From Epithemia pelagica (lineage: Eukaryota > Protista > Bacillariophyta), in the NCBI GenBank assembly GCA_946965045.2, contig OX337229.1:3286001-3350000 (forward strand): 64,000 bases of DNA, written 5' to 3'. The notes beneath the pieces are model-generated. The model was given only the letters and a program-made list of their open reading frames with translations, made no database searches and was not told where the DNA came from. A program made the translations under genes and the position numbers. Below are positions 11,375-26,244 of this stretch, piece by piece (the first letter of the stretch is position 1; every line of letters begins with the position of its first letter).

Positions 11375-14300
11375 CTACTTGTTTGCAACAGGGCGCCGAG
11401 CTTTGATCTTTCGTCGTCTGTTGGTCCCTCCAGTACCCATAGTGAACCCCGATGCCCCGCCATCCGCACCTGCAAGTCCAAAGCCTGAGCCTGGCGTGGT
11501 AGCCCCAATTCCAGCACTGGGATTGGGAGTAGAAGCCCCAAACCCGGGAGCTGCTGTTGGTTGCCCCATTCCACCACTTGCTGGTGGAACACTTCCAAAC
11601 ATACCTGTCGGTGCGCTACTTGCAAAACCTGGACCAGGCGTAGGTGATGCAAACGTCGGTGCGTTTGGAGGGTTGCTAGAGCTTGGAAATGGAGCCCAGG
11701 GAGCATTCCCCGGCGTGCCTGTTCCAAACCCAGCAGTGCCGGTCCCTGGCGGAACCGCAGATGGATTAGGCGTGTTGCTAGCACCTCCAAAGAACCCGGG
11801 GACAGAGGTATTGGTTTTCGGGCCTCCAAACGTCGTGCTTGTTGGTAGTCCTCCAAAAGAAGTTACAGGGGCTCCAAAGTTTGGAGCCGACGCCGAGGAT
11901 CCTCCAAAGGGAGGGGCAGAAGGGTTTCCGAAAGTTGTCCCAGACGGAGCCGGTGCTGGGGTTCCCCCTCCGAACCCAGGTTGACCAAAGGAAGCAGTAG
12001 CTGTTGTGGACCCAGTAGTCGTTTCTCCCGACGAAGCGTTGGAACTACCAAACTGAAACACTGAACTGGAAACCGGAGCCTTTAATGAAGGCTCGGGAGC
12101 GGTGTTTTTGTCGACACCAGGTGTGGTTGTCCCTAACGTATGTGCCGGAGCTGCGTTTGCAGCCGGAATCGATGGTGTCGTCCCAAACGTAAGTGCTGGA
12201 GTTACAGTTTTGTCGGATATAGGGGCCTTTGTGCCAAACGTTGCAGCTGGCGCAGCATTCTGGTTCGGGTTCGAGGGCGCTGTTTCAAACGAAAAACCCG
12301 GCGCAGCATTCTTCTCTGGGATCGAAGGTGCTGTCCCAAACAAAGGTGTAGATGCAACGCTCTTCTCGGCGATTGGTGCCGTAGCAGTAGCACCAAACAA
12401 AGGTGCCGATGTCGTGCTCTTGTCGGCGATTGGTGCCGTAGCACCAAACGAAGGTACGAAAGCTGCGCCTTTATCAGCGGTTGGCGCTGGAGCAGTAAAC
12501 GAAGATGCGGGCGCTAAACCCTTGTCCGCAATCGGTGTCGAAGCGCCAAAGGATGACGTTCCAAATGACGACGATGCTGTAGATTTTTCTGTGGGTTTCG
12601 CAGCAGTATCCGCAACCTGAGTCGATTTTTGTCCAAAAGTAAAAGGGACAGTCGTCCCTACCACACTTGAGGAGGCGGAAGCAGAATTATTGGTAGCACC
12701 AAACTGAAATGGCTTGGAGGGTGGCAAGGAAACGCCATTCGGAGCACTGTCCGTCTTTGGACGGTCTCCGTTTTCGAGGGTCTTCGGTGTGGGAGTCTGT
12801 CCATTCGGTTTGTCCTTCTTGTCTGCTTGAGTTGTCGGCCACGCAAATCCATTCGAAGGACCCGGAGGCGCCGTGCTCAGGAGAGATGCCGTCTTGGGTA
12901 AACTTGTGGTCGACTCAGAAGGTTTCGACGGTTCGTCTCTTCGGATTTTCTTGTCATTCGGTTGTGACGAAGGCGAACCGAACGTTATGGAAGGTGCAGA
13001 AGATTTGGCGGTGGCTATGGCTGCCGTTGGTGCCATTGATAGCGATGTTGACAGTGACGTCGATGCAGAACTGGGGAATGCGAATCCTGGCACCCCAGAG
13101 GCTTTGTCTGTTTTATCCGTACTGGTCGATGTGCCAAACGTGGAGGACTGGAAGGAGAACCCTCCGGAAGAGGTAGGATTACTGTTTTCTTTATCTCTGG
13201 TAGTGTCGGCTTTCGTGCTTGCTGTTCCAAAGCCGAACGACCCAAAGGAGGATGAGGACGACGTTGCGTTGGCCGCGGACGCTTGTTTCGGCGCAGAGGG
13301 GGGAAGTAACGTAAAACCGCTCGATCCAATCGAGCCTGTTACCCCGTTGGACTCGTTCTTTGGCTGTGTCTGCCCCGCTTGGTTTCCATCACTTGTTTCC
13401 ATTGACTTTTCTGCCTTCTCTGGAGTTTTGTCACTCGGGAAGCGTTCCGCATCACAAGAGCGACACTGGGATGCAGACTCTGGGTTTCGGGAAAAGCATG
13501 TGGAGCATTTCCACCCACTGGAGTTTGCTTGCAAAAAAGCTGTATCCCACGTTGATGTAGTGGGTTTCTCCGTCCTTCGTGCTCCGCACTGCAGGCACTC
13601 GGATTCGTCGTTGGGGTTCATGGCTCCACATTTCGAGCACTTCCATTCATCCGATTCCCTCGCACGCGACTTTTTGGGTTCTTTTGTGTCTCCTGTGGAA
13701 TCTCCCACTTCTGACTTATCACCTTTTGTCACTTCATCGTCCTCTGTGGACGTTATTAAGTCGGAATCGGACAGTGTGGGGTTGTCTCCCCACCGATGGT
13801 AGCGTATTGGCAACCCCGGAGCGGTGACATCATCGGAAGGAACTCGCGTACCATCGTCATCTCCTGGCTCCAACAAACATTGGTAAACTCCATCGATGTC
13901 ACGTGGACGCAAGGAAGTCGGTTCAATGGCATGGCGATCAGAATCAGATGATGCGGTTGACCCCGATGCATCTGTCGATTGCGGAGACGTGAGTCCATGT
14001 TGGAATTTGACACGTTTGTGTCGATCGGGCATGGTCAATTCTGAACCGTCCACAGACGCTCCATCCATCTCGAACTTTCGTTTCTGATCTGAAAGCAAGC
14101 GATCGTGTGACTCGTGAATAGTCCTCCCTTTCCGCAACATGACTTTTGTGGAGAGAGACAGCGGTAAACTTCGCGGTGGCTTGCGAGGCGGAAGCTCCAA
14201 GCTTTTTCGAATTTCATCTGCCGTAAGATTGGTGGCCTTAAGACCCAGGTGCTTGTTTCCGACTTTCGAGGACGGTCTCCATTCCATTCGTGCAACACCT

Positions 14301-14851
14301 CGTCTGACTTTTACACTTTTCTGTTTAGATGCAGGAGCCGCTTTCCTAGGAAGACTGCGAGACGTCACGGAGGGTGTCTTGCGATAGCTGGTGGTCGAGG
14401 AAGAAGGCCTCCATGGTGATTCCGCAGGAAAGGAAGGGGCAAACGAAACAGTAGACTTTCTAGCGTCAGTGCGTGCCAGTGAGGAAACTGGCAGGTTGTT
14501 TTGGGAATCTTCCAGTTTTTGTTGCTTTGAAGGAGGAGGCTGAATCGGTAAATGGTTGGAAGTGCCATTGGCCACTACTAACTCAGACGAGGAAGTTCCG
14601 CTGCTATGCGGCATATCCAGTCGAGCCACAAAGGGCGCCCTCGATCGGGGAGACTGCAGTTTGGCTGGCGAGGCATCGATTGGACTATGCTTCTTCTTGG
14701 CCGTAGACGCTCCCCAACCAAACAATGCCAACCCCCAACCAGGGGTTTTTGGCGCCGGAGTCTTTGTGGACTCCTCCGGAGTTGTGGGCGTTTTCTTCGA
14801 CAGAGTGGAATCCATCAAGTCACTAAGAAAATTCTCTTGATCAGCAAACAC
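11375..14851 (-). CDS. Nup153/Nup1-like nuclear basket nucleoporin with two RanBP2-type zinc fingers
   Basis: WKCSKCGAMNPNDESECLQC and WKCSTCFSRNPESASQCRSC (W-x-C-x2-C-x3-N-x6-C-x2-C), a long FG/FxFG region and a basic C-terminus RRRKIKARRP. Start is uncertain: first ATG at 14815, or an upstream exon. Confidence 0.8.
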   Translation of the reverse strand: MFADQENFLSDLMDSTLSKKTPTTPEESTKTPAPKTPGWGLALFGWGASTAKKKHSPIDASPAKLQSPRSRAPFVARLDMPHSSGTSSSELVVANGTSNHLPIQPPPSKQQKLEDSQNNLPVSSLARTDARKSTVSFAPSFPAESPWRPSSSTTSYRKTPSVTSRSLPRKAAPASKQKSVKVRRGVARMEWRPSSKVGNKHLGLKATNLTADEIRKSLELPPRKPPRSLPLSLSTKVMLRKGRTIHESHDRLLSDQKRKFEMDGASVDGSELTMPDRHKRVKFQHGLTSPQSTDASGSTASSDSDRHAIEPTSLRPRDIDGVYQCLLEPGDDDGTRVPSDDVTAPGLPIRYHRWGDNPTLSDSDLITSTEDDEVTKGDKSEVGDSTGDTKEPKKSRARESDEWKCSKCGAMNPNDESECLQCGARRTEKPTTSTWDTAFLQANSSGWKCSTCFSRNPESASQCRSCDAERFPSDKTPEKAEKSMETSDGNQAGQTQPKNESNGVTGSIGSSGFTLLPPSAPKQASAANATSSSSSFGSFGFGTASTKADTTRDKENSNPTSSGGFSFQSSTFGTSTSTDKTDKASGVPGFAFPSSASTSLSTSLSMAPTAAIATAKSSAPSITFGSPSSQPNDKKIRRDEPSKPSESTTSLPKTASLLSTAPPGPSNGFAWPTTQADKKDKPNGQTPTPKTLENGDRPKTDSAPNGVSLPPSKPFQFGATNNSASASSSVVGTTVPFTFGQKSTQVADTAAKPTEKSTASSSFGTSSFGASTPIADKGLAPASSFTAPAPTADKGAAFVPSFGATAPIADKSTTSAPLFGATATAPIAEKSVASTPLFGTAPSIPEKNAAPGFSFETAPSNPNQNAAPAATFGTKAPISDKTVTPALTFGTTPSIPAANAAPAHTLGTTTPGVDKNTAPEPSLKAPVSSSVFQFGSSNASSGETTTGSTTATASFGQPGFGGGTPAPAPSGTTFGNPSAPPFGGSSASAPNFGAPVTSFGGLPTSTTFGGPKTNTSVPGFFGGASNTPNPSAVPPGTGTAGFGTGTPGNAPWAPFPSSSNPPNAPTFASPTPGPGFASSAPTGMFGSVPPASGGMGQPTAAPGFGASTPNPSAGIGATTPGSGFGLAGADGGASGFTMGTGGTNRRRKIKARRPVANK

Positions 14852-15294
14852 AACTGTTGAAAGGGCTCTCTTTCGTTTATTCGATGATGCAAAAGGATGA
14901 GCTTATACCATCCGTCTCCGACAAAGAGAGGTATTGTGTGAAACGCCGCTGCGACGAAACGGAGATCGAGCGGCTACCGTCCGTCTGTCGTCTGTGGAGC
15001 ACACGCGCGCCGGCCGCGCTCTATTGCATTTCTCTTCAGTGGGGGCGACAGTGAAGAAGGGACCCCAAATTCACATCACGGGGTATTATGTATTATGTTA
15101 CTCATGTCCTAAAATTTTGGTCCTCGACCCACGATAGGAATAGGTAGGGCTACGGGCTTTGAAGACTCATTTACTCCTATGTTGTAATCAATGACAATCA
15201 TGATCTACCTAGAAAGATTCTGTGTACAACATGGCTTCATAAAGAATGATCATGTCACAATTCACAATGTACGAGATACAGCATGGTTCTAAAA

Positions 15295-18200
15295 TTAGGA
15301 GGGCGGCTTGAAAACAGCAAACTGAGGAGTGGCAGGAGGTTTGGAGGAAGCTGCTCCATCACTACTAGAAGGAGGCCCTCCTCCAGGCTTGAAAGAGGGA
15401 GGTGAGCTCATGCCCGACGTCGCCGACGTTGAATGTGCTTTTCGACCACCCAGTCGCCGCGCTGGTGGTGGAGCCATCATCATGGACAATGGATCTTTTG
15501 GCGCAGCCGGTTCCGCTGGCTCTTGCTGCGGGGCCATGGGTGTCGTGGGAGGAGGTCCTGCCGAAGCGGGGATATCGGTCGGGTCCTCACCTGGAAATAC
15601 CCAACGCTTGAGTTTCTCATCGTAGTAGGCTTCCATTTTCTCACCAACATCGGCGAGCGATGCATCGGGATGCAATCGGGATAAAAAGTAGTCCCGGATT
15701 CCAAAATCGAACCAAGCCTTTTTCTTGTCCGACGACTTGGGGGTACCATCCGATTTCATCTTGTGAAGATTCGCTGGAGCTGAAGATGGGGCCTTTGGAA
15801 TTTGGGGTCCACCACCGCCTCGAGCGGGAGTGGTTTCCAATGCCGAAGGCTGGCCAGTTCGTTTGGGGATTTGGTGTTTTGGAATTTCTTTGGTAGTTTC
15901 GGGGCCCCGTTCCTCTGACGTTGACTTGGGTGTCGAAGGATGAACGAGGGCGGGGCTCTTTTTCTTCACTTCTGTGGTGGGGACACCAGGAAATACGGGA
16001 GAAGAGTGTGGAGCTTTCGACGGGGTGGTTGGTTTGGTCATGGGCTCGGTGTGAGGCATGGGATCCATCACTTGCCCTCTTGGGCCTGGCGCCAGGGGTG
16101 GAGTGTCGGAAGGAGGAGGGCGGTTCTCGAGAGGGGCCAATTCGGAATGGGAGCCAAGGGCCGGTCGTTTACTCAACGCTGCCGGTGGCTTCTCCACCTT
16201 TGGAGCAGATGACACTCGAGCCTTTGCGGGAGGCTTCGACATCTTGGTCGGACCGGATTTTGGCTTTGGAGGTTCTTGTTTTGAAATGGCAAGGCCCTTG
16301 TTGTTACCTTTCACCTTTTGTTCTGGCGGGACCACTGTCACATCGCCTTTCGGTTGTCCCGAGGCAGATGCTTCTTTCTTACTTGTGAGTGAAGACAGTA
16401 TGGGTTTCCCGCTGTTCCGAAATCGTTCCAGTCGATCGCGGAGACTATTCAGGGCAACCACTAATGATTTCTTTTCCGTAGACAGGACGGCCAATCCCAA
16501 TGGCTTCTGGGTGTCTACCGATGCAAGGTCGTCATATGACGATTCTCCTAGGCTTTCAAGGGCGCTGGTGACGTAACGATAGGCATCTTCATCAAATCCA
16601 TATTCCATAAGTCGCATAGCATAAACTGCCTGAAAGGCTTGGAGTGTTCTGATTGTGGCATTGGGGTTCCCTCGGCGTTTGGCCCATTCGTATGCCTCGG
16701 TTCGAAGAAAGGATTCAATGGCGCAGTCTGTGTTAAGCACCACGTCCGATGGAGTCATGTTACACCCAACAAGCGTCCAGCGCGAGTCTCTCTGGAGAGG
16801 GCTTGTTATGGGTATTCCGCTAACCATGAAACAGAAATGAGCTGCTTCATTTAGACCGACTTGGCGGAGGCGGTCACCGAGAGCAATGACTGCGGACTCC
16901 CAGCCAGGTATTCGATTGTTGATGATGGCGGCCAAGTGACTAGGCCATGATGCAACTAAATCTGTCGTTGTCTTGCCGAACAGAGAATTACTGGTCGTAC
17001 CGACCTGCGAGGGAGATGCAAACATCACTGCAACTGTATGCAATGGAGAACCTTGTGCAAGAGCATTGCGACAGAAGTGTTCTGCAGCTTTCTGGTACGT
17101 GTCTCGTCCACACATACCAGCAACGAGCAGAGCCAAGCCATGCTGCCCCTCTCGGATGGCACAGTCCACTGCCTCCTCGCGTTTCCCACGTACTAAAAGC
17201 TCTTCAATAGAACCTATGTCAGTTCGACCTGTTGCAAGTTGTTGTCAGAAAGGGAAGAAGGATGGGAGCACGAAAATATATTTGGCACAATCATGTAACT
17301 TACGTTCAGTAACACTCGACTCAGAGTTTTCTTTCTCGTTTCTTTTGCTGCTAGTTGAAGGGAAGCCCTTCTCTTCCAACAACATACGGACGACTGCAGT
17401 TTCAGGGCTGTTGGGATCTGCAACGCCATTAAAACTTCGAAGCCTTCCCTTCGATTTTGCTGCAATAGAGATGAGGCGCCACAACAGGTCACTCCTCTCT
17501 CTCCTTTCGTGTGATTTCATGTAAGCCTTCACGTGGTCTTCCTCAGCTTTTCGCAATGGACCAATGATCCCGTGTGATCGTTTCTCGTGCGTAGCCATAG
17601 ACAGAGCATCACCAGCCAATGATTCATGCATCCTGCGAATAACAATACGACCTTGTCGGTCTAAAGTACAGATGTTACCTCCAAAGGCAAGATGCGCCGT
17701 GGCACAAAATGGACGACCTTGTTTGCCGTTTTTCTGTTCACTTTTGTCAATTTCTGAACGAATCGAATCTACAGGTTGGGTAGATCTACTGTCAAATCCA
17801 TGAGTGGGCGACACGCTCGAAACAACTTCCCAGCCATCGGCTTCGACCGGGGGAGTCTCATCAGGGCCAACGACACGTTTTTCCACTGAGACGATCGGTT
17901 GTTCCTTCTTGACTGTGTCCAAGGTTTCGGAAGGGGGATCCCATCTAACATCTCCAGTGACAGTATTGTAGTAGTACTGCTTTCCCGTTGCGTCATCTTC
18001 GGCTTGAACCCAATCAGATGGAAGGTTCACCTGTTTCAGAGAATCATCAGCAGAATCCAACTTTGGGATTTGCTCCGTGGATCCCCAATTCGACGGCTTT
18101 TCCCAACTTGTCTCACCTGTGATCTGGTTGTAATAGTATACGGTTTGACTTGTCGGGTCTACCGCTTCCACCCATTCGTTGGTTAACTCTTCGCCCGGGG

Positions 18201-21200
18201 TTTGTGCACTATTGGGTTCTTCAGTAGGTCCTCTTGACTCGTCACCGACTGGAGCGTGATCTAACTCACCACGTGGTTGAACTTCTTCCCAGCCCGAGGG
18301 GAGGTCACTCTCACCGGTGTCTTCATTCCGACTTGAATCAGCATCTGGTGTTGTAATATCAATCTGTCGAGTGTCCGTGTCTTCTTTGTCCATTTCGACG
18401 ATCTCATTGTTCTCAGGACGACTGAGTGCTTGACTTTCGGACGACACCACAGATTCCACTACATCCTGCCTATCCGAAGAGATGGGTTCCCCGACGGCAC
18501 TATCGTCCAATGGCATCTCCCAAGAGGTCTCTCCTGTGTCTCGATTGTAGAAGTACTTTTGACCCGTGGAGTCAGTAGCTTCCATCCAAGGGTTCATCGG
18601 AGGATCAGATGTGTTGTGGTCACCAGCCACTGGCTCCAATCTATTCTGGACAATATCACGGGACTCTTTTTCGTTGAGCACATCGGACTCAACAAACTGA
18701 GGGTTGTCTTTGGTCTCTAGGCTTTGGACGACTTCTGTGGACAGAGCTTCTGTTTCTGTGGGTTCAGAAGAAACCATGACATCAGACTCTTCAATATTGT
18801 CGGCTATTGGTTCTTCAGAACGACTACCGACCAGGTGCTGTGCCTGCTGATCCAGCTCTTGCGAAAGGATAGGTCGTTCCCACGACGTTTCACCAGTTTC
18901 ACGGTTGTAAAAGTACGACCGATCCAGATCGGGGTCACTGACTTCCTCCCACCCTGGCGGAGGAGCACTTATGGTACTCTCACTCTCCTTGGGGACAGGC
19001 TGGTCTTGATCGGTTCCGGATGGAGGGACACCTTCATTTTCGATAAATTCTTTCGAATCCCCCCACACAGGTTCATAATCGCCTTCATTATTTTCCAACT
19101 TTCCTGGATGGGCAGCTTGGAAAGTTTCGTCGGCAGACTCAGTCACATTGTTTGCTATCATATCATCACTTTCCATGTTGTTGGAAACAATGGGAACTTC
19201 CCACGAAGTTTCGCCACTTTCTGCGTTGAAATAATACGTTCGCCCAGACGTTGGATCTGTCTCTTCCGACCACATCGGTGGAAGGCTCTTGGCGTTGTTG
19301 TCTCTGGAGACTTCCTCGCTTTTGGTCTGGACTTCGTCCTGGGATGTGACTGGTTCAGCTGTTACCTTTGTTGGGCACTCCTTTTCTGGTGCTTCGTCAA
19401 TCATTTCCACCGTGGCCGATGCTTCGTCTTCAATTATACCAGCTAGCACCGATGAGTTTGGGTTGTGTTCATCGGGCATGGAGCTGTCAATGTCCGGTGG
19501 AGACGTCCCGTGTAGGACAGGTCGTTCCCATGTGGTTTCTCCATTCTCTGCATGATAATAATAGGACCGACCCGAAGCTTCATCTTTCACTTCCACCCAG
19601 CCACTTGGTAATTGACCATCACCGTTATAATCAAGACTGGGACCCGTCTCCGCTATGGATGGCGAATGCTCGTTGGAGGTTTCAGTCAAGCCTTCGCTTT
19701 GCTGCTCGGTCGAATCATGTTGCTCCAATGGTTGTTCTGATTCGACGGACTGGGGGGCGTCTGTCGTGGAATCCAGCGGAGTACCCGGCTCGTCCTGATT
19801 GTTGCTAATTGGAATCGTACTGGATTCAGACTGCTGAGGCAACTGCGAATTTTCGGGCTGTGCGACTTCGTCAACCACAGTTCCGGATGATGGGAAAACG
19901 TCAACGGCAGAAATATGTGGCTCGGACGAGGTAGGACGATCCCAGGAAGTTTCTCCAGTCTCACTGTTGTAAAAGTAGGGTCGATCATGATGTGGATCAA
20001 CAACTTCCTGCCAAGAAGGAGGAAGAGGATCTTTGTCGCCGTCATGCTCCAACATGGGAGGTGCATCTTGTTCAGTTCCTGACACCGGACCGTCTCCGTT
20101 TTGAATCAATTCATCTGACTCACCGGCTCCATATTCGGGAGCACCATTTTCAGTACGATCAATTGTTGATTTGGTAACAGACACCATCTCATCCATGACC
20201 TCAAAATCACCATTTCCAACGTCATCGGAGACCGCTGGAAGTTCCCACGAAGATTCTCCGGTTTCTGAGTTGTAGTAATATGTTTGACCTGATGTTGGGT
20301 CCGTGGTTTCTGTCCAAGCCGATGGAAGTTTCTTAATGTCGCGTTCCGTTCCGGTTTCGGAAATCTCCGTCGGGTACTCGTCCTTGTCGATAACGGTGGG
20401 CTCAGTCAATGACTCCGTGACAGGCTGCTCTTCTCCCCGTACAAGAGGCTGTTGTTCCTCTGGCACGTCCGCATTGCTGTCACCAGTGCCAGGTGCTTGT
20501 TCTTCTGCAATTTCATCTTGCGCTGTCGTGGATAGCAGATGGTCGTCCTCGTCGTCGACGATTGCTTGCTCGTCACGGTTGTACGAACTTTCATCCACAG
20601 GTCGCTCCCAAGTAGTTTCTCCTCGTTCTGCGTGATAAAAGTAGGACTTACCAGATGCTTCATCATGAGCTTCCACCCATCCACTTGGCAAATGATCGCC
20701 GTCATCATTTTTGCTCGTTTCATCCTTCTCGGCCAACGGGATATCATCTGGAGTTGTTTCCATCAAAGCAGAGTCTAGCTCCTCAGTCTGATCATGATTC
20801 AAGGGTTGTTCTTTTTCACTATCCACGGACGAAGTGGGTATCATAGACGAAGTCGCTGGGGGAATGCTTGCCTGCAAATCGGATACTTTGTCCGGATCCG
20901 TGACAAGTGATGGGTCAGGATCAAAAGGCTCCGTTTCTCGGGCACTCTCATGTTCCGCCATTTCATCCTCCAAAATAGCTTGCGGCTCGGGATGATCGAC
21001 CACATCGTCTGGATGATCATCAGTTACCGGGACAACGCTTGGTCGTTCCCATGAAGTTTGACCAGTGTCGCTGTTATAGAAATACGGCCGATCCTGAGTG
21101 GGGTCAACCACCTCCTGCCAACCTGGAGGCAGTGCACCATGTATGTTGCTCTCATCCGAGGAAGGTTGAACTTGTTCATTTTCAAACGAATGAACATCTT

Positions 21201-24200
21201 CCTTTTCAATAAATCCATCCGGCCCTGACTGTACAGGTTCTGAATCTACTTGTTCACTTGCCTCAACTGCTGGTAGGGCCACTTCCAAAGACGTTTCGTC
21301 GGCAGACTCCTTTGCAATCATATCCTCACTTTCCAGGGAAGCAATGGGAAGTTCCCACGAAGTTTCTCCAGTTTCTGAGTTGAAATAGTATGTTCGACCC
21401 GAAGTTGGATCCATCGCTTCCGACCACATCGGTGGAAGGCTGTTGGCGTTGTTGCCCATCTGGATTTCCTCGGCCGTTGTCGGGGGCTCTTCTTGGGTCG
21501 TCATACTCGCTTCCGCCTCTGCCACGGCGAAATGTTCATCTTTCTCTAGATGCTTGTTTTCTGATACGTCGACCGTGCCTAATGCTTCTTCTTTTACGTC
21601 ATCATCTTGCACGGTTGTGTTAGGTTCATGGTCCTCCTCCTTGTGATCCGACAGTGGCTGCTCGTCGGGCGTGCGATTGTCCACTTCCAATGGAGACGGT
21701 TCATGTGAGACAGGTCGTTCCCAAGTGGTCTCTCCGTTTTCAGCATAGTAATAATAGGATAGACCTGATGTCTCATCCTTCACTTCCACCCATCCACTGG
21801 GCAGGGGATCATCATTGTTTAACTCATGATTGGCATCCGTTTGCTCTTCAGTTGACGGCACAGGTTCGGTGGTGGTTTCCATCAAGTTTGGTGGTTGCTC
21901 CGTCGTGGCATGTGGCTCAAGTGGTTCCATAGACACCGTGGCATCTGCCATGGAATCCAGCGGCGGGCCCTGTTCGTTCGGGTGGTTGTCGTTTGGAACC
22001 GTACTGGGTTCCGACTCGCGAACTTGTGCACTCTTTGGCTCGTCCGTTCCCGATTCGGTTGGCTCGTCCGTTCCCGATTCAGGAAGCTGGTGGTCCACGG
22101 CAAGAGACGTTTGAGACTCGGACACGGCAGGACGATCCCAACACGTTTGGCCCGTCTCCTGGTTATAAAAATAAGGGCGGTCGTAATTGGGGTCCGTGAC
22201 TTGTTCCCAGCCCGGAGGAAGGGGCGCTTCGTCGTGGGTCAAGGACGCAGCATCCTGTGCAGAGGATTCTACCGGTTCTGCCACCAATGTATCCGGCTCG
22301 ACCGACACAAGGTCCTTGTCAGGTCCCTTCTCCTCTTCTAGATTGGGGGTAGAGGAGGCATCCGCGCCCAGGTCGGTCGTTTCTGCGACAGCCTCGGTAG
22401 TCTCCGGCTCGCTGTTGGGAGCGACAGCGGGACGTTCCCACGAGGTTTCTCCAGTTTCCGAATTGAAATAATAGGTTCGACCAGTGGTTGGGTCCGTCGC
22501 TTCCGACCATGGGGATGGCAGTTCTTGGTCGACACTCGTTGTGGACTCGACTGGTTCTGTCGTTGTCGGTTCCGACACGGGTGTGGTCGTCTTCAGTTCC
22601 AATGGAGTTTCTTCTTCTTGTGGTGATGGCGCACTGTCGTTGGCGCTTGGTTCGACTGGGTCGGAAGATGCATTCCACACAGTAGTAGTCGTCGTCGTGT
22701 TTTCCTGTTCCTTTGGCAGAGTCGTTGGTGCTTCCGGTTCCGCGACATTTGTGGTTGTTGTTGGTTCTGGCATCGACGATTCAGACGGTGGTAGAACCGG
22801 TCGTTCCCACGTCGTTTCTCCGCGTTTGGCATGATAATAATAGAATCGCCCCGTAGCTTCATCCGTTGCTTCCACCCATCCACTCGGCAACGGTGCTTCC
22901 TTTTCTTGGTCGGGGACCGTGTCGGTGGGAGTAAGTTCCACCACGGGTTCCTCTGCTTCCACCGTGGCGGTCGCATCTGCCAAAGTGTCGACCGGTGTGG
23001 CGGCGTGGTCCACGGTCGTCATTGCGGGCGTCTCCGTGGTGGTAGTCGGTTGCAGTGTCGTTGGTGCTTCCGGTTCCGCGACATTTGTGGTTGTTGTTGT
23101 TGTTGTTGGTTCTGGCATCGACGACTCGTCCGGTGGTAGAACCGGTCGTTCCCACGTGGTTTCTCCGCGTTCGGCATGATAATAATAGAATCGCCCCGTA
23201 GCGTCATCCGTTGTTTCCACCCATCCACTCGGCAATGGTGCGTCCTTTTCTTGGTCGGGGACCGTGTCGGTGGGAGCAAGTTCCACCACGGGTTCCTCTG
23301 CTTCCACCGTGGCGGTCGCATCGGCCACAGTGTCGACCGGCGTGGCGGCGTGGTCCACTACGGTCGTCCTTGCGGGCGTCTCCGTCGTGGTGGTGGTCGG
23401 TGGTGGTGTGGACTCCTCCTCCTCCAAGGGTGGAATGTGGGGTGGTGGTTCAGATGCCGACGTAGATACCGGTTCCGGAGTGGGTGCGTGCCACGAGGTT
23501 TCGCCCGTCTTGCTGTGATAATAATACGTTCGCCCCGATGGATCCGTGGTGGGGAGCCACTCTCCTCCTCCTCCTTGGTCGTCTTTTTGAGACTCTTCCT
23601 GGACTGCGTTGGGGGAGGACGACGACGTGGGACCCAACGTCGCGGGTGGAACCGTGGCGTTCCAACTACTACTCGTAGTAGTACTTGTACCAGTACCATT
23701 GTCAGCGTCACGGACCGTGCTTTGTGGGACGGAAGGAGCTTGTGTCACGGAGGTTGTTGGGGGCGGTAAGGGCGACAGGGAAGGTGACAATCGGACCGAC
23801 GGCGACGACGGTGGTTCTCCTGCGGCACCGTGTGCGGACGATGACGCACCGGGTCGCGGCAAGTGTCGTTTGGAGGTTGGACGCGTGGGAGGCAATTTGT
23901 ATCGACCGCTGCTGCGAGGGGCTGGACTCACGCGTCCTCCTTCCACTTGGGTGGTGGTGGTGGTGGTGTGCGGTGGTTTGGTCGGAGTGGTGGTGACGGG
24001 CGATCCTCCGCGTCGTCCGGGTGGACGTGGTAAGGGTCGAGGTCGCACATGTGGATGGGATCGCGGAGAATGGTGTCGAAGACTTGTCGTACTGGTGGGA
24101 GGGCCCGTACTGGACAATGGTGACGACGCGGCCATGTCGGGGGTGGCCGGTGTATTCGGAGGAGGAACCGGCAAAGTGGGATGCCCCCTGGTGGTAGAAG

Positions 24201-24459
24201 TTTGATGGGAGGCCGCAGGGACAGAAGAAGAAGGAGTGAACAGAGCCAGGGGAGAGGCATGGATGGATGTAGCCAGTGGAACCTGTGGTTGCTGCGGCTG
24301 TTGCAACGGGGTAGATACATGACTACTGGAGGATGGTGGTGGTGGATGCAACTGGGATGAATGGGGATTGGAAAATAACAGGGCTGCCTGGTTGGAATCG
24401 TCACCACTGCCGGCGGCGTGTGGGGGTTGACCTACCGATGTGGGTGGTGGTCCATACAT
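15295..24459 (-). CDS. SEC16: Sec16 (COPII/ER exit-site scaffold) with an N-terminal array of WW domains, ~3029 aa
   Basis: Exons 24459-17304 and 17228-15295, with a 75-nt GTAAGT...CAG intron; total 9090 nt in frame. Sec16 motifs occur on both sides of the intron: RPFCATAHLAFGG, IIGPL, DLLWRLI, ELLVRGKREEAVDCAI, HLAAIINNR, LGDRL..EAAHFC, TEAYEW, YAMRLMEYG and C-terminal YYDEKLKRWV. Confidence 0.85.
17930..23570 (-). repeat. Array of 17 complete plus 1 truncated WW domains
   Basis: Repeated LP.GW.E..D..(S/T)G..YY(Y/F)(N/H)...G(E/Q)T(T/S)W(E/D).P units separated by acidic Ser/Thr/Pro spacers. Confidence 0.95.
22715..23400 (-). repeat. 345-bp near-identical tandem duplication containing WW2 and WW3
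   Basis: atgataataatagaatcgccccgtag occurs at 22831 and 23176; flanking spacer sequence is also duplicated. Confidence 0.9.
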
Positions 24460-25170
24460 GCTGAGAGATCCGTTTTGTTGGAGCGTGTTGGCCTTGGTGG
24501 AAGAGTCGTGCGATCGAGAGTCGAGAGGATATCCAAAAATGATCAACGGGGCTAAATCGTTGGTGGCTTTCCTTTCGAGAACAAAGTGGAGTCAATGTGA
24601 CAAAGAAACGCCACTACCAAGAATAAATCATGCAAGGATTTATTGGAATCCTGACGATGATTGGAGGATACAAATGAGAAACCTTTGCTCTCTGTGGACA
24701 TAGAGATCTTATCGTTGCTCTCAATAGACCAAAATGGGAACAAGTGACCGGAGGGAGAGGAATGACGATGGTGCGTGCGCGGCGACGCCGACGCGTTGAT
24801 GGCGTGCGCCGTGCGCATGGAGTGTGCTATGCGCGACTACAACCCAAATGACTACGCCTCAGCCTCCTGAAGGGAAGGATATAGGAATAAATCTTTAAGT
24901 AAAAGTTTTCTCTAACCGATGAGAAGTGGTTTGTTCCCGTCGCCATCATTTTCGCAATGGTGGGTGTGTCTGCTGCCGACGACAAGAAAATTGCTCAATG
25001 ACAGTATCGAATATTGGCGGTGCGACTCTGATTCCCCATTGATCGACTTTTCTTCTCTTGCACCACGAAGGGAGCCACAACAACGACGGCACTGTAGTTG
25101 TGAGATTGAACAAGACACGAACCAAAGGCCCACCCGAAAACTGCTCCATTCTCAAAAAGTTTTGGAAACA

Positions 25171-26244
25171 ATGCTACTCTGGCACACGACAAGACCGTTT
25201 GTCGTTATACTGTTGGTTCTGGCCTACAGCTGCTCGGTCGTGGCAGCACCCAATGAATTGTTTGATTCTTTGGATACGAACCACGATGGATCTCTGGCCA
25301 AGGAGGAATTGTTTGATGCCGCGGATCTCAATCACGACGGTGCCTTGGACGCCACCGAATTTCAAACCTTGTCGAGCAAATTTCAAGCTCTGGCGGCCGC
25401 TGCGGCGGCATCTCCCGCCGCCAAAACCTTGTTGCAACAAGCATCGGCCACCACCGCAACTGCCACCTTGTCGTCCCTCGTGGGATTTTGGAAAGCCTTT
25501 ACGTCTTCCTTTGCCATGATTTTGGCCACGGAAGTGGGCGACAAGACCTTTTTCATTGCCGCCATTTTGTCCATGAAACATTCGAGGGCCGCCGTCTTTG
25601 CCGGGGCGTTTGCCGCCTTGATTGTCATGACCATTTTGTCCACCGCCATGGGCTTGGTTTTGCCCACCTTTGTCCCTCGCAAATACACGCATTGGTTGGG
25701 CGGCATTCTCTTTTTGTATTTTGGAGTCAAACTGCTCTACGACAGTCGCACCATGGATGCTGGAAAGGCGTCGGAAGAGTTGGAAGAAGTTGAAGAAGAG
25801 TTGGGCACCACATCCAGTAACAAAAAAGCTGATATTGAAGAGGGACAAGCCGCACAATCATCGTCTTCGACGACAAGGGGTGGCGTCGTGCATCGGAAAG
25901 CACCACCACCCAACACATTGTCGGGAACAATCTCCACCACCAACAGCAAAGGCGTGGGTATTACCTCCAAAAATTGGTATCAAGTTGTGTTGCAATCTTT
26001 TACCTTGACCTTTATTGCCGAATGGGGCGATCGAAGTCAAATTGCCACCATTGCCCTGGCGGCCGCCAAAAACCCCATTGGCGTGACGATTGGTGGTACC
26101 TTGGGACATTTCATGTGTACGGGGGCTGCCGTCTTGGGTGGACGAATGATTGCCTCTCGCATTTCCGAAAAAACGGTCAGTCAAGTAGGAGGCATTATAT
26201 TTTTCATCTTTGGGATACATTCCCTCTTTTTCGAGTCGGACTAA
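25171..26244 (+). CDS. GDT1: GDT1/TMEM165 (UPF0016) Ca2+/Mn2+ transporter with signal peptide and two EF-hand loops
   Basis: Both family motifs are present (EVGDKT and EWGDRSQ), with an acidic central loop EELEEVEEEL, a hydrophobic N-terminus after the ATG at 25171, and EF loops DTNHDGSLAKEE and DLNHDGALDATE. Confidence 0.92.
   Translation: MLLWHTTRPFVVILLVLAYSCSVVAAPNELFDSLDTNHDGSLAKEELFDAADLNHDGALDATEFQTLSSKFQALAAAAAASPAAKTLLQQASATTATATLSSLVGFWKAFTSSFAMILATEVGDKTFFIAAILSMKHSRAAVFAGAFAALIVMTILSTAMGLVLPTFVPRKYTHWLGGILFLYFGVKLLYDSRTMDAGKASEELEEVEEELGTTSSNKKADIEEGQAAQSSSSTTRGGVVHRKAPPPNTLSGTISTTNSKGVGITSKNWYQVVLQSFTLTFIAEWGDRSQIATIALAAAKNPIGVTIGGTLGHFMCTGAAVLGGRMIASRISEKTVSQVGGIIFFIFGIHSLFFESD

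Follow-up and report, generated by a model that had tools for sequence, protein, structure and literature searches.

The locus described here lies in a 64,000-nucleotide (nt) stretch of the genome of the raphid pennate diatom Epithemia pelagica (contig OX337229.1, positions 3,286,001 to 3,350,000 of the forward strand), hereafter called the window, to which all coordinates refer. On its minus strand, at 15295..24459, the window carries a two-exon gene with a 9090-nt coding sequence (CDS) for a protein of 3029 amino acids (aa). The protein is a Sec16, the scaffold that organises COPII assembly at the exit sites of the endoplasmic reticulum (ER), and upstream of its conserved core it bears an array of 17 WW domains.

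Exon 1 (24459..17304) and exon 2 (17228..15295, with the stop codon at 15297..15295) are separated by a 75-nt GT-AG intron (17303..17229; GTAAGT...CAACAG) that falls within a codon of the Sec16 central domain. The listing of open reading frames (ORFs) gives the two parts as 17245..24546 and 15295..17169 on the minus strand, joined via this intron. Its removal joins ACT GAA C to GT CGA in frame and leaves a spliced CDS without internal stops, the start codon at 24459 being the first ATG past an upstream stop. When public runs were laid out over 15295-21200, X1-X3 kept the intron, and a 1245-nt contig of run X4 omitted exactly the 75 nt, with CT..AC ends on the plus strand. X4 is a transcriptome-like, 39-Mb contig set whose longest contig is 19.6 kb; X2 is DNA-like, with 0.5-Mb contigs. 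Because X2 has the same single-nucleotide polymorphism (SNP) alleles around the splice site as X4 yet keeps the intron, the skip in X4 reflects splicing and not an intron-less allele. The RNA fold of the intron showed nothing unusual (z -0.14). Across the junction the spliced protein aligns gap-free with the Epithemia clementina protein (61% identity over 487 aa), and it is also colinear with the Cylindrotheca, Nitzschia and Fragilaria proteins. Sec16-WW is a real, expressed gene.

An earlier note on this DNA, made from the sequence alone, had described one ORF with a Pro-rich N-terminus, 17 WW domains and the start of the Sec16 core, joined in frame to the rest of that core by a single canonical 75-nt intron. 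Pfam's count of 17 WW domains and the colinearity of orthologues uphold the ORF, and the X4 contig is spliced exactly where the intron had been placed. A very improbable account, by now largely refuted, takes the array to be a neutral repeat expansion without specific function, or the whole to be an annotation artefact joining two genes. An artefact is contradicted by the ORF itself, which runs unbroken from WW17 to the first strand of the Sec16 core (GRPFCATAHLAFGG), 68 residues away, and by transcript-derived proteins of other diatoms that hold both parts. We return to neutral expansion below.

Two conserved regions identify the protein as Sec16. The central domain runs across the intron: its exon-1 part (aa 2245-2385; 17305..17727), delimited by orthologue colinearity, holds the GRPFCATAHLAFGG strand region and the first helices, and its exon-2 part (aa 2386-2640; 16465..17228) is an ACE1-type alpha-solenoid. 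Pfam assigns the exon-2 product to TPR_Sec16 (PF12931) at E 4.6e-34, with 119 bits vs a cutoff of 22 over exon-2 residues 7-226. PF12932, the Pfam Sec16 mid-region model, did not score at E<=0.01 on this protein and is on record for centric-diatom relatives; the start of the core in exon 1 is backed by orthologue colinearity from the FGGxxC strand onward. A HMMER search of a 1.84-billion representative library with the exon-2 product retrieved 772 homologues, with named Sec16 proteins of Phytophthora, Albugo, Bremia, Aphanomyces, Hyaloperonospora, Andalucia and Raphanus among the matches.

The second region is the C-terminal conserved domain (aa 2875-2935; 15580..15762), defined by a cross-eukaryote alignment and containing the YYDEKLKRWV motif (aa 2920-2929; 15598-15627). 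Its block …G..MEAYYDEKLKRWVFPGE…PPP (…GEKMEAYYDEKLKRWVFPGEDP…PPP) matches the Sec16 C-termini of diatoms, oomycetes, Andalucia and Raphanus residue for residue. The PPP column after the motif is conserved across the eukaryotes aligned, and C-terminal-only matches to oomycete Sec16 reach E 2.7e-22. By composition, the stretch between core and C-terminal domain (aa 2641-2874; 15763..16464) is a disordered Pro/Lys-rich region. The protein ends in a tail (aa 2936-3029; 15298..15579) with the conserved PPP run about 15 residues past YYDEKLKRWV and a PPPARR motif. The identification as Sec16 offered by the earlier note thus stands on the PF12931 score and the C-terminal alignment, and the YYDEKLKRWV motif that it had read is present here and conserved in oomycete, jakobid and plant Sec16.

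In yeast, the ACE1 solenoid with its strand insertion is the Sec13-binding module. For the fold we modelled the core of the E. clementina orthologue (393 residues, 60-sequence alignment) and not this gene's own product. The AlphaFold2 model (predicted local distance difference test score 87, predicted template-modelling score 0.85) has strands at 18-22 and 28-32, then a helical solenoid. Among PDB entries it is closest to yeast Sec16, as solved with Sec13 in 3MZK (E 1.2e-7, template-modelling score 0.57), and the next matches are Sec31 ACE1 edge elements. With phmmer, the exon-2 piece had no match among PDB sequences; kinship with yeast Sec16 is visible only in the fold. The exon-1 end of the core (aa 2170-2385) had no match in a word-indexed protein search, an uninformative result, as its relatives were later found by full HMMER. 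A feature search of the ESM Atlas yielded nothing beyond generic Sec16 clusters, which did not resolve by taxon.

The WW array spans aa 297-2176 (17932..23571, PF00397). Its domains, all on the minus strand, lie at 23482-23571, 23143-23235, 22798-22890, 22429-22521, 22129-22221 and 21712-21804 (WW1-WW6), at 21346-21438, 21040-21132, 20599-20691, 20236-20328, 19933-20025 and 19519-19611 (WW7-WW12), and at 19192-19284, 18871-18963, 18511-18600, 18094-18186 and 17932-18024 (WW13-WW17). Pfam finds the same 17 stretches in the exon-1 product (PF00397, E 5.4e-183). As the pattern of a WW domain we took some 30 residues in which two Trp stand 20-23 apart, an aromatic cluster lies in the middle and a Pro comes 2-3 residues after the second Trp. 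All 17 fit this pattern, and in every one both Trp and the closing Pro are kept. When representatives of the three domain types, A, B and C, were compared with solved structures, their WW relatives were those of PRPF40A/Prp40, NEDD4L, WWP1, Itch and Pin1 (E down to 1.8e-15). A- and B-type domains have their closest solved relatives in the PRPF40A/Prp40 WW domains (E 1e-10 to 4e-7), and B-type domains (…TSGRTYYFN…) also give many Pin1 WW matches. The disordered linkers between domains, 27-120 aa long, are acidic: Asp+Glu make up 19-30% of them, and basic residues are few. The array as a whole has a net charge of -342. Between WW15 and WW16, at 18300-18330 (aa ~2044-2052), lies a degenerate WW start, LPSGWEEVQPRGELDH…, which looks like what is left of an eighteenth domain after erosion; E. 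clementina has 18.

How widespread is the fusion? A profile hidden Markov model built from the 17 WW domains was scanned against all retrieved Sec16 proteins, divided into close relatives (>33% identity in the TPR part) and distant ones (<=33%), both with more than 400 aa upstream of the TPR. WW domains were found in 71 of 71 close relatives, in 1-27 copies, with a median of 11 for those with more than 800 aa upstream; every named close relative is a diatom. None of the 26 distant Sec16 proteins (oomycetes, plant, jakobid and others) has them; the earlier note too had taken yeast, animal and plant Sec16 to have none. Precomputed Pfam annotations list PF12931 and PF00397 together for 38 of 38 non-plant matches of one search and for most of another. 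Transcript-derived proteins of the MMETSP likewise hold WW and Sec16 on one transcript.

The named carriers include both pennate and centric diatoms. Among raphid pennates, WW domains number 18 in Epithemia clementina (KAL7561967.1), 24 in Seminavis robusta (where the protein is named 'transport protein SEC16B'), 27 in Cylindrotheca closterium (A0AAD2JJ75), 23 in Nitzschia inconspicua (KAG7359509.1), 24 in Nitzschia sp. Nitz4 and 13 in Fistulifera solaris. The araphid pennate Fragilaria crotonensis (KAI2496147.1, 'COPII vesicle coating') has 11. Centric diatoms have 12 in Chaetoceros debilis (A0A6S8TR00, 'Protein transport protein sec16'), 8 in Cyclotella cryptica, 12-13 in Skeletonema and 6-10 in Thalassiosira. 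All 13 orthologues examined for charge have strongly acidic arrays (net -120 to -480). In a maximum-likelihood tree of the core, centric sequences stand apart from pennate ones and this gene is sister to that of E. clementina (99/98 support, 69% identity); 28 of 28 diatom rows are WW-positive and 6 of 6 outgroup rows WW-negative. The simplest reading of these sequences is a single gain of WW domains at or before the diatom stem, non-diatom ochrophytes lying outside the sample. Three distant WW-Sec16 matches (P0200-P0202), suspected of being non-diatom and so of making the fusion older, proved to be from Thalassiosirales (Thalassiosira, Skeletonema, Cyclotella), and no evidence of WW-Sec16 outside diatoms was obtained in a sample without non-diatom ochrophytes.

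The fusion is therefore only partly the new architecture that the earlier note had proposed. Among diatoms it is the norm, present in all 71 close relatives that have a long N-terminus, and it is named in public databases, where one JGI record is already titled 'Sec23-binding domain of Sec16/WW domain'; full-text literature searches found no paper that describes it. Diatom Sec16-WW is a distinct variant of a known scaffold, clade-wide, visible in databases and apparently undescribed, and the gene in the window is an ordinary orthologue within its clade. Since the fusion is clade-wide and already deposited, the value lies in recognising the diatom Sec16-WW class and not this one gene.

The array is a product of tandem duplication. 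A young 345-nt tandem duplication (22749..23358, minus strand, 94% identity) gave WW2 and WW3, and the array shows a three-domain period of ~1.04-1.11 kb together with a ~2.19-kb six-domain duplication across 19183-22896 (repeat families D1-D5). Other arrays contain homogenised, near-identical units: seven in Seminavis, six in Epithemia and three in Fragilaria. Because homogenisation occurred separately in each species, the arrays expanded by independent tandem duplication. The A-B-C order of domain types was considered as a conserved 'code' and rejected, other diatom arrays being homogenised differently and the pattern lineage-specific. Across the sequences compared, the conserved feature is many WW domains on acidic spacers, not the A-B-C order.

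A second copy of the locus allows constraint to be compared along the gene. Contig ctg1349l of ENA ERZ21939226 (428791-448668; hereafter L003) corresponds to 15003-24983 of the window at 96.2% identity over 10 kb and comes from the other haplotype or from a sister strain. There the GDT1 neighbour is syntenic, the gene has no stop, and the intron is the same with one difference. The ratio of non-synonymous to synonymous substitution rates (dN/dS) against L003 is 0.03 in the Sec16 core, 0 in the C-terminal conserved domain, 0.33 in the C-terminal disordered region, 0.46 in the WW domains and 0.92 in the linkers. None of the 17 WW domains has a replacement at either Trp, at the closing Pro, in the Thr/Ser-x-Trp or within the aromatic triplet. 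This pattern, with every ligand-contact residue kept, is supportive but not decisive for purifying selection on the WW domains. As a separate observation, synonymous divergence (dS) from L003 in the N-terminal tail is 0.008, far below that in the rest of the gene (0.04-0.08).

These comparisons bear on neutral expansion, the other half of the account set out above. Copy numbers from 1 to 27, arrays homogenised within species and linkers evolving near neutrality (dN/dS 0.92) are what such an expansion would produce. Opposed to it are the retention of WW domains in all 71 close relatives, centric and pennate, and a WW dN/dS half that of the linkers, with every signature residue kept in both copies. 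The five indels that separate L003 from the window, every one a multiple of three, speak against neutral expansion and artefact alike. Retention across all sampled diatoms is a stronger argument for constraint than the dN/dS values.

Both ends of the protein are rich in Pro. The N-terminal disordered tail (aa 1-296; 23572..24459) is 20% Pro and 30% Ser+Thr, with a net charge of +9 and four PPP runs, and the whole C-terminal part is 17% Pro with a net charge of +23. Seven of the protein's 10 PPP runs are in the tails, which also carry 24 Ser/Thr-Pro sites; a motif scan found neither PPxY nor PPLP in this Sec16 protein. At aa 139-147 (24019..24045) the N-terminal tail contains RPRPLPRPP, a candidate in-cis WW ligand. 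The N-tail aligns with that of E. clementina at 38% identity; the VRPRPLPRPP block is identical in the two, and they also share an RYKLPP block. RPRPLPRPP was not found in the other diatom orthologues compared, and as it is present only here and in E. clementina we discarded the idea that this self-ligand is a conserved diatom feature.

What might the WW domains bind? The strand-2 triplet, which across the three domain types is YYY, YYF or YFY, continues with H-A, N-S or N-x and not with N-H, and in all three a Thr/Ser stands two residues ahead of the second Trp. As a class rule, aromatics at the first and third triplet positions, with no PPxY-class His after Asn, favour poly-Pro, PPLP or Pro-Arg ligands over PPxY. 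Each WW domain would thus bind short Pro-rich motifs, most likely of PPLP, PPPP or Pro-Arg type, which are favoured because of the three consecutive aromatic residues and the Thr/Ser-x-Trp. In PRPF40A, PPLP and PPPP are contacted by the same aromatic positions and Thr/Ser-x-Trp (PMC11079029). PRPF40A/Prp40/FBP11 and the diatom protein have in common these aromatic positions, Ser/Thr-x-Trp and a Pro-rich segment N-terminal to the WW domains. PRPF40A differs in having two WW domains, then FF domains, and a role in splicing, whereas here 17 WW domains are carried on a COPII scaffold.

We consider it likely that this diatom Sec16 uses its WW array as a multivalent reader of Pro motifs at exit sites. 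It would be a multivalent receptor that takes hold of disordered Pro-rich regions with high avidity. Candidates for its ligands are the Pro-rich region of Sec31, further COPII regulators that bear PPP, and the basic Pro-rich tails of Sec16 itself. Judged from the sequences, multivalent binding of Pro-rich COPII regions or of the protein's own tails is plausible, as is the earlier note's idea of a multivalent Pro-motif platform that would nucleate condensate-like exit sites. Tail binding could occur in cis or between molecules; it could cross-link them or, as in PRPF40A, auto-inhibit the array. Ligand binding would concentrate coat components and keep them in place, and the array would do for localisation and avidity what the disordered upstream region does in other eukaryotes. 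Condensate formation is speculation.

This proposal fits what is known of COPII. Assembly of the coat is currently put down to weak multivalent contacts of Sec23 with disordered regions rich in Pro: PPP motifs in Sec31, TANGO1/cTAGE5 and Sec16 bind Sec23, drive multivalent COPII assembly and stabilise the coat (PMC7594496). The TANGO1 Pro-rich domain also binds Sec16 (PMC5461033). Like the PPP/Sec23 gelsolin network (Sec31, TANGO1/cTAGE5, Sec16 DR2), the proposed diatom system would depend on disordered regions whose short Pro motifs are recognised multivalently, and the tails of this protein carry PPP too. In the known network Sec16 bears motifs and Sec23 reads them; diatom Sec16 would also read, at many sites, and with WW domains instead of a gelsolin fold.

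Two other uses of the array deserve mention. It may be mainly regulatory, auto-inhibited by its own Pro-rich tails or reading phospho-Ser/Thr-Pro like Pin1, so that kinase signalling or ligand competition, not avidity, would switch the scaffold. PRPF40A provides a precedent, as its N-terminal Pro-rich motif auto-inhibits the WW tandem and its authors propose that this is general for WW tandems (PMC11079029); here and in E. clementina a basic Pro-rich tail with RPRPLPRPP lies directly upstream of the array, B-type domains give many Pin1 WW matches, and the tails hold 24 Ser/Thr-Pro sites. We nonetheless regard a mainly regulatory array as unlikely. One or two tail motifs cannot fill 17 domains, Skeletonema and Fragilaria lack a Pro-rich N-tail, and the equivalence to Pin1's phosphate-binding residues is putative. 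Less probable still is recruitment of non-COPII clients to exit sites, such as poly-Pro proteins of the formin FH1 type and the actin machinery, adaptors of the ubiquitin system or trafficking factors peculiar to diatoms, which would link ER export to another process in place of strengthening the coat. Prp40/FBP11-type WW domains do bind formins, WASP and many Pro-rich proteins (PMC11079029), but the known Pro-motif networks of exit sites involve coat components (PMC7594496, PMC5461033).

Several points weigh against reading the array as a multivalent Pro-motif receptor on a Sec16 scaffold. We infer that run X4 is RNA, its library type not being on record. The structural match to yeast Sec16 comes from a model of the E. 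clementina orthologue, 61-69% identical to this protein. The WW dN/dS of 0.46, from 34 substitutions in WW codons, indicates moderate constraint only. Ligand class is not reliably readable from sequence, given that the solved relatives of these domains span Prp40, NEDD4 (class I: NEDD4L, Itch) and Pin1 (class IV) and that several classes have similar scores, and the ligands named above are candidates only, their proteins being encoded outside the window. Within the set of 13 orthologues, raphid pennates again have Pro-rich N-tails, and those of Skeletonema and Fragilaria are Pro-poor; because tail motifs are not conserved across diatoms, self-binding is not a universal function of the array.

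Set beside Sec16 elsewhere, the diatom proteins combine a known scaffold with a different upstream region. Yeast Sec16p, human SEC16A/B, plant SEC16A/MAIGO5 and oomycete Sec16 have the same strand insertion and ACE1 solenoid core (PF12931), the same C-terminal domain with the YYDEKLKRW(V/I)FPG motif and downstream PPP, and likewise very large size with long disordered flanks bearing PPP motifs. Their upstream region is unstructured; here it holds 17 folded WW domains on acidic linkers. Diatom Sec16-WW proteins keep one order throughout: a variable N-tail, the acidic-linker WW array, the Sec16 core and the conserved C-terminus. The core of this gene is 69% identical to that of E. clementina and 34-46% to those of other named diatoms. 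Named full-length diatom proteins have 6-27 WW domains, and number and sequence types differ between species because the arrays were amplified independently. Specific to the lineage of this gene are the A-B-C triplet pattern and, shared with E. clementina, RPRPLPRPP.

Of the core components of ER export, Sec16 is the one least understood. Diatoms, a major group of eukaryotes whose secretory load is unusually heavy and specialised, have placed a long array of folded WW domains, the predicted readers of Pro motifs, in the poorly conserved region of Sec16, and so provide a natural experiment on multivalency. Outside its central domain, the only conserved part, Sec16 is poorly conserved and disordered (PMC4419792). 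Multivalency predicts WW ligands among exit-site proteins, which can be tested in the transformable diatoms Phaeodactylum and Thalassiosira. More tentatively, and against what we think the better odds, one may picture a WW/Pro-motif exit-site network peculiar to diatoms, in which the array stands in for the upstream localisation region, recognises motifs of PPP/PPLP type in Sec31 and in Sec16's own basic tails with very high valency, and drives condensate-like assembly, that valency (about 6-27 in full-length proteins) being tuned by tandem duplication in each lineage.

The public runs and contigs contain further variation at this locus. Relative to the window, a CAG is inserted in frame after 18176 in runs X2-X4, which also share dozens of SNPs between 15352 and 20772, and both alleles occur within one run in several repeat-rich stretches. 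This indicates that the sample is heterozygous or mixed-strain, which fragments short-read contigs across the array. A joint at which the read layout 'goes back 2018' was considered as a rearrangement and dismissed: the contig there enters the internal six-domain repeat (14 mismatches). In two Thalassiosirales-type contigs (L001 and L002) the Sec16 ORF is interrupted as well, but within PF12931 and not immediately ahead of that domain, and intron position may differ between centric and pennate lineages.

The gene is flanked on both sides. Downstream, on the same strand, lies a 1158-aa ORF with a RanBP2-type zinc finger (11375-14851; PF00641, E 9.7e-9). On the plus strand, a divergently transcribed gene encodes a cation/proton antiporter of the GDT1/TMEM165 family into which a pair of EF-hands is inserted (24919-26244; PF01169, E 3.8e-45; EF-hand_5, E 5.8e-10); this gene and Sec16 have a promoter region of ~460 nt in common.

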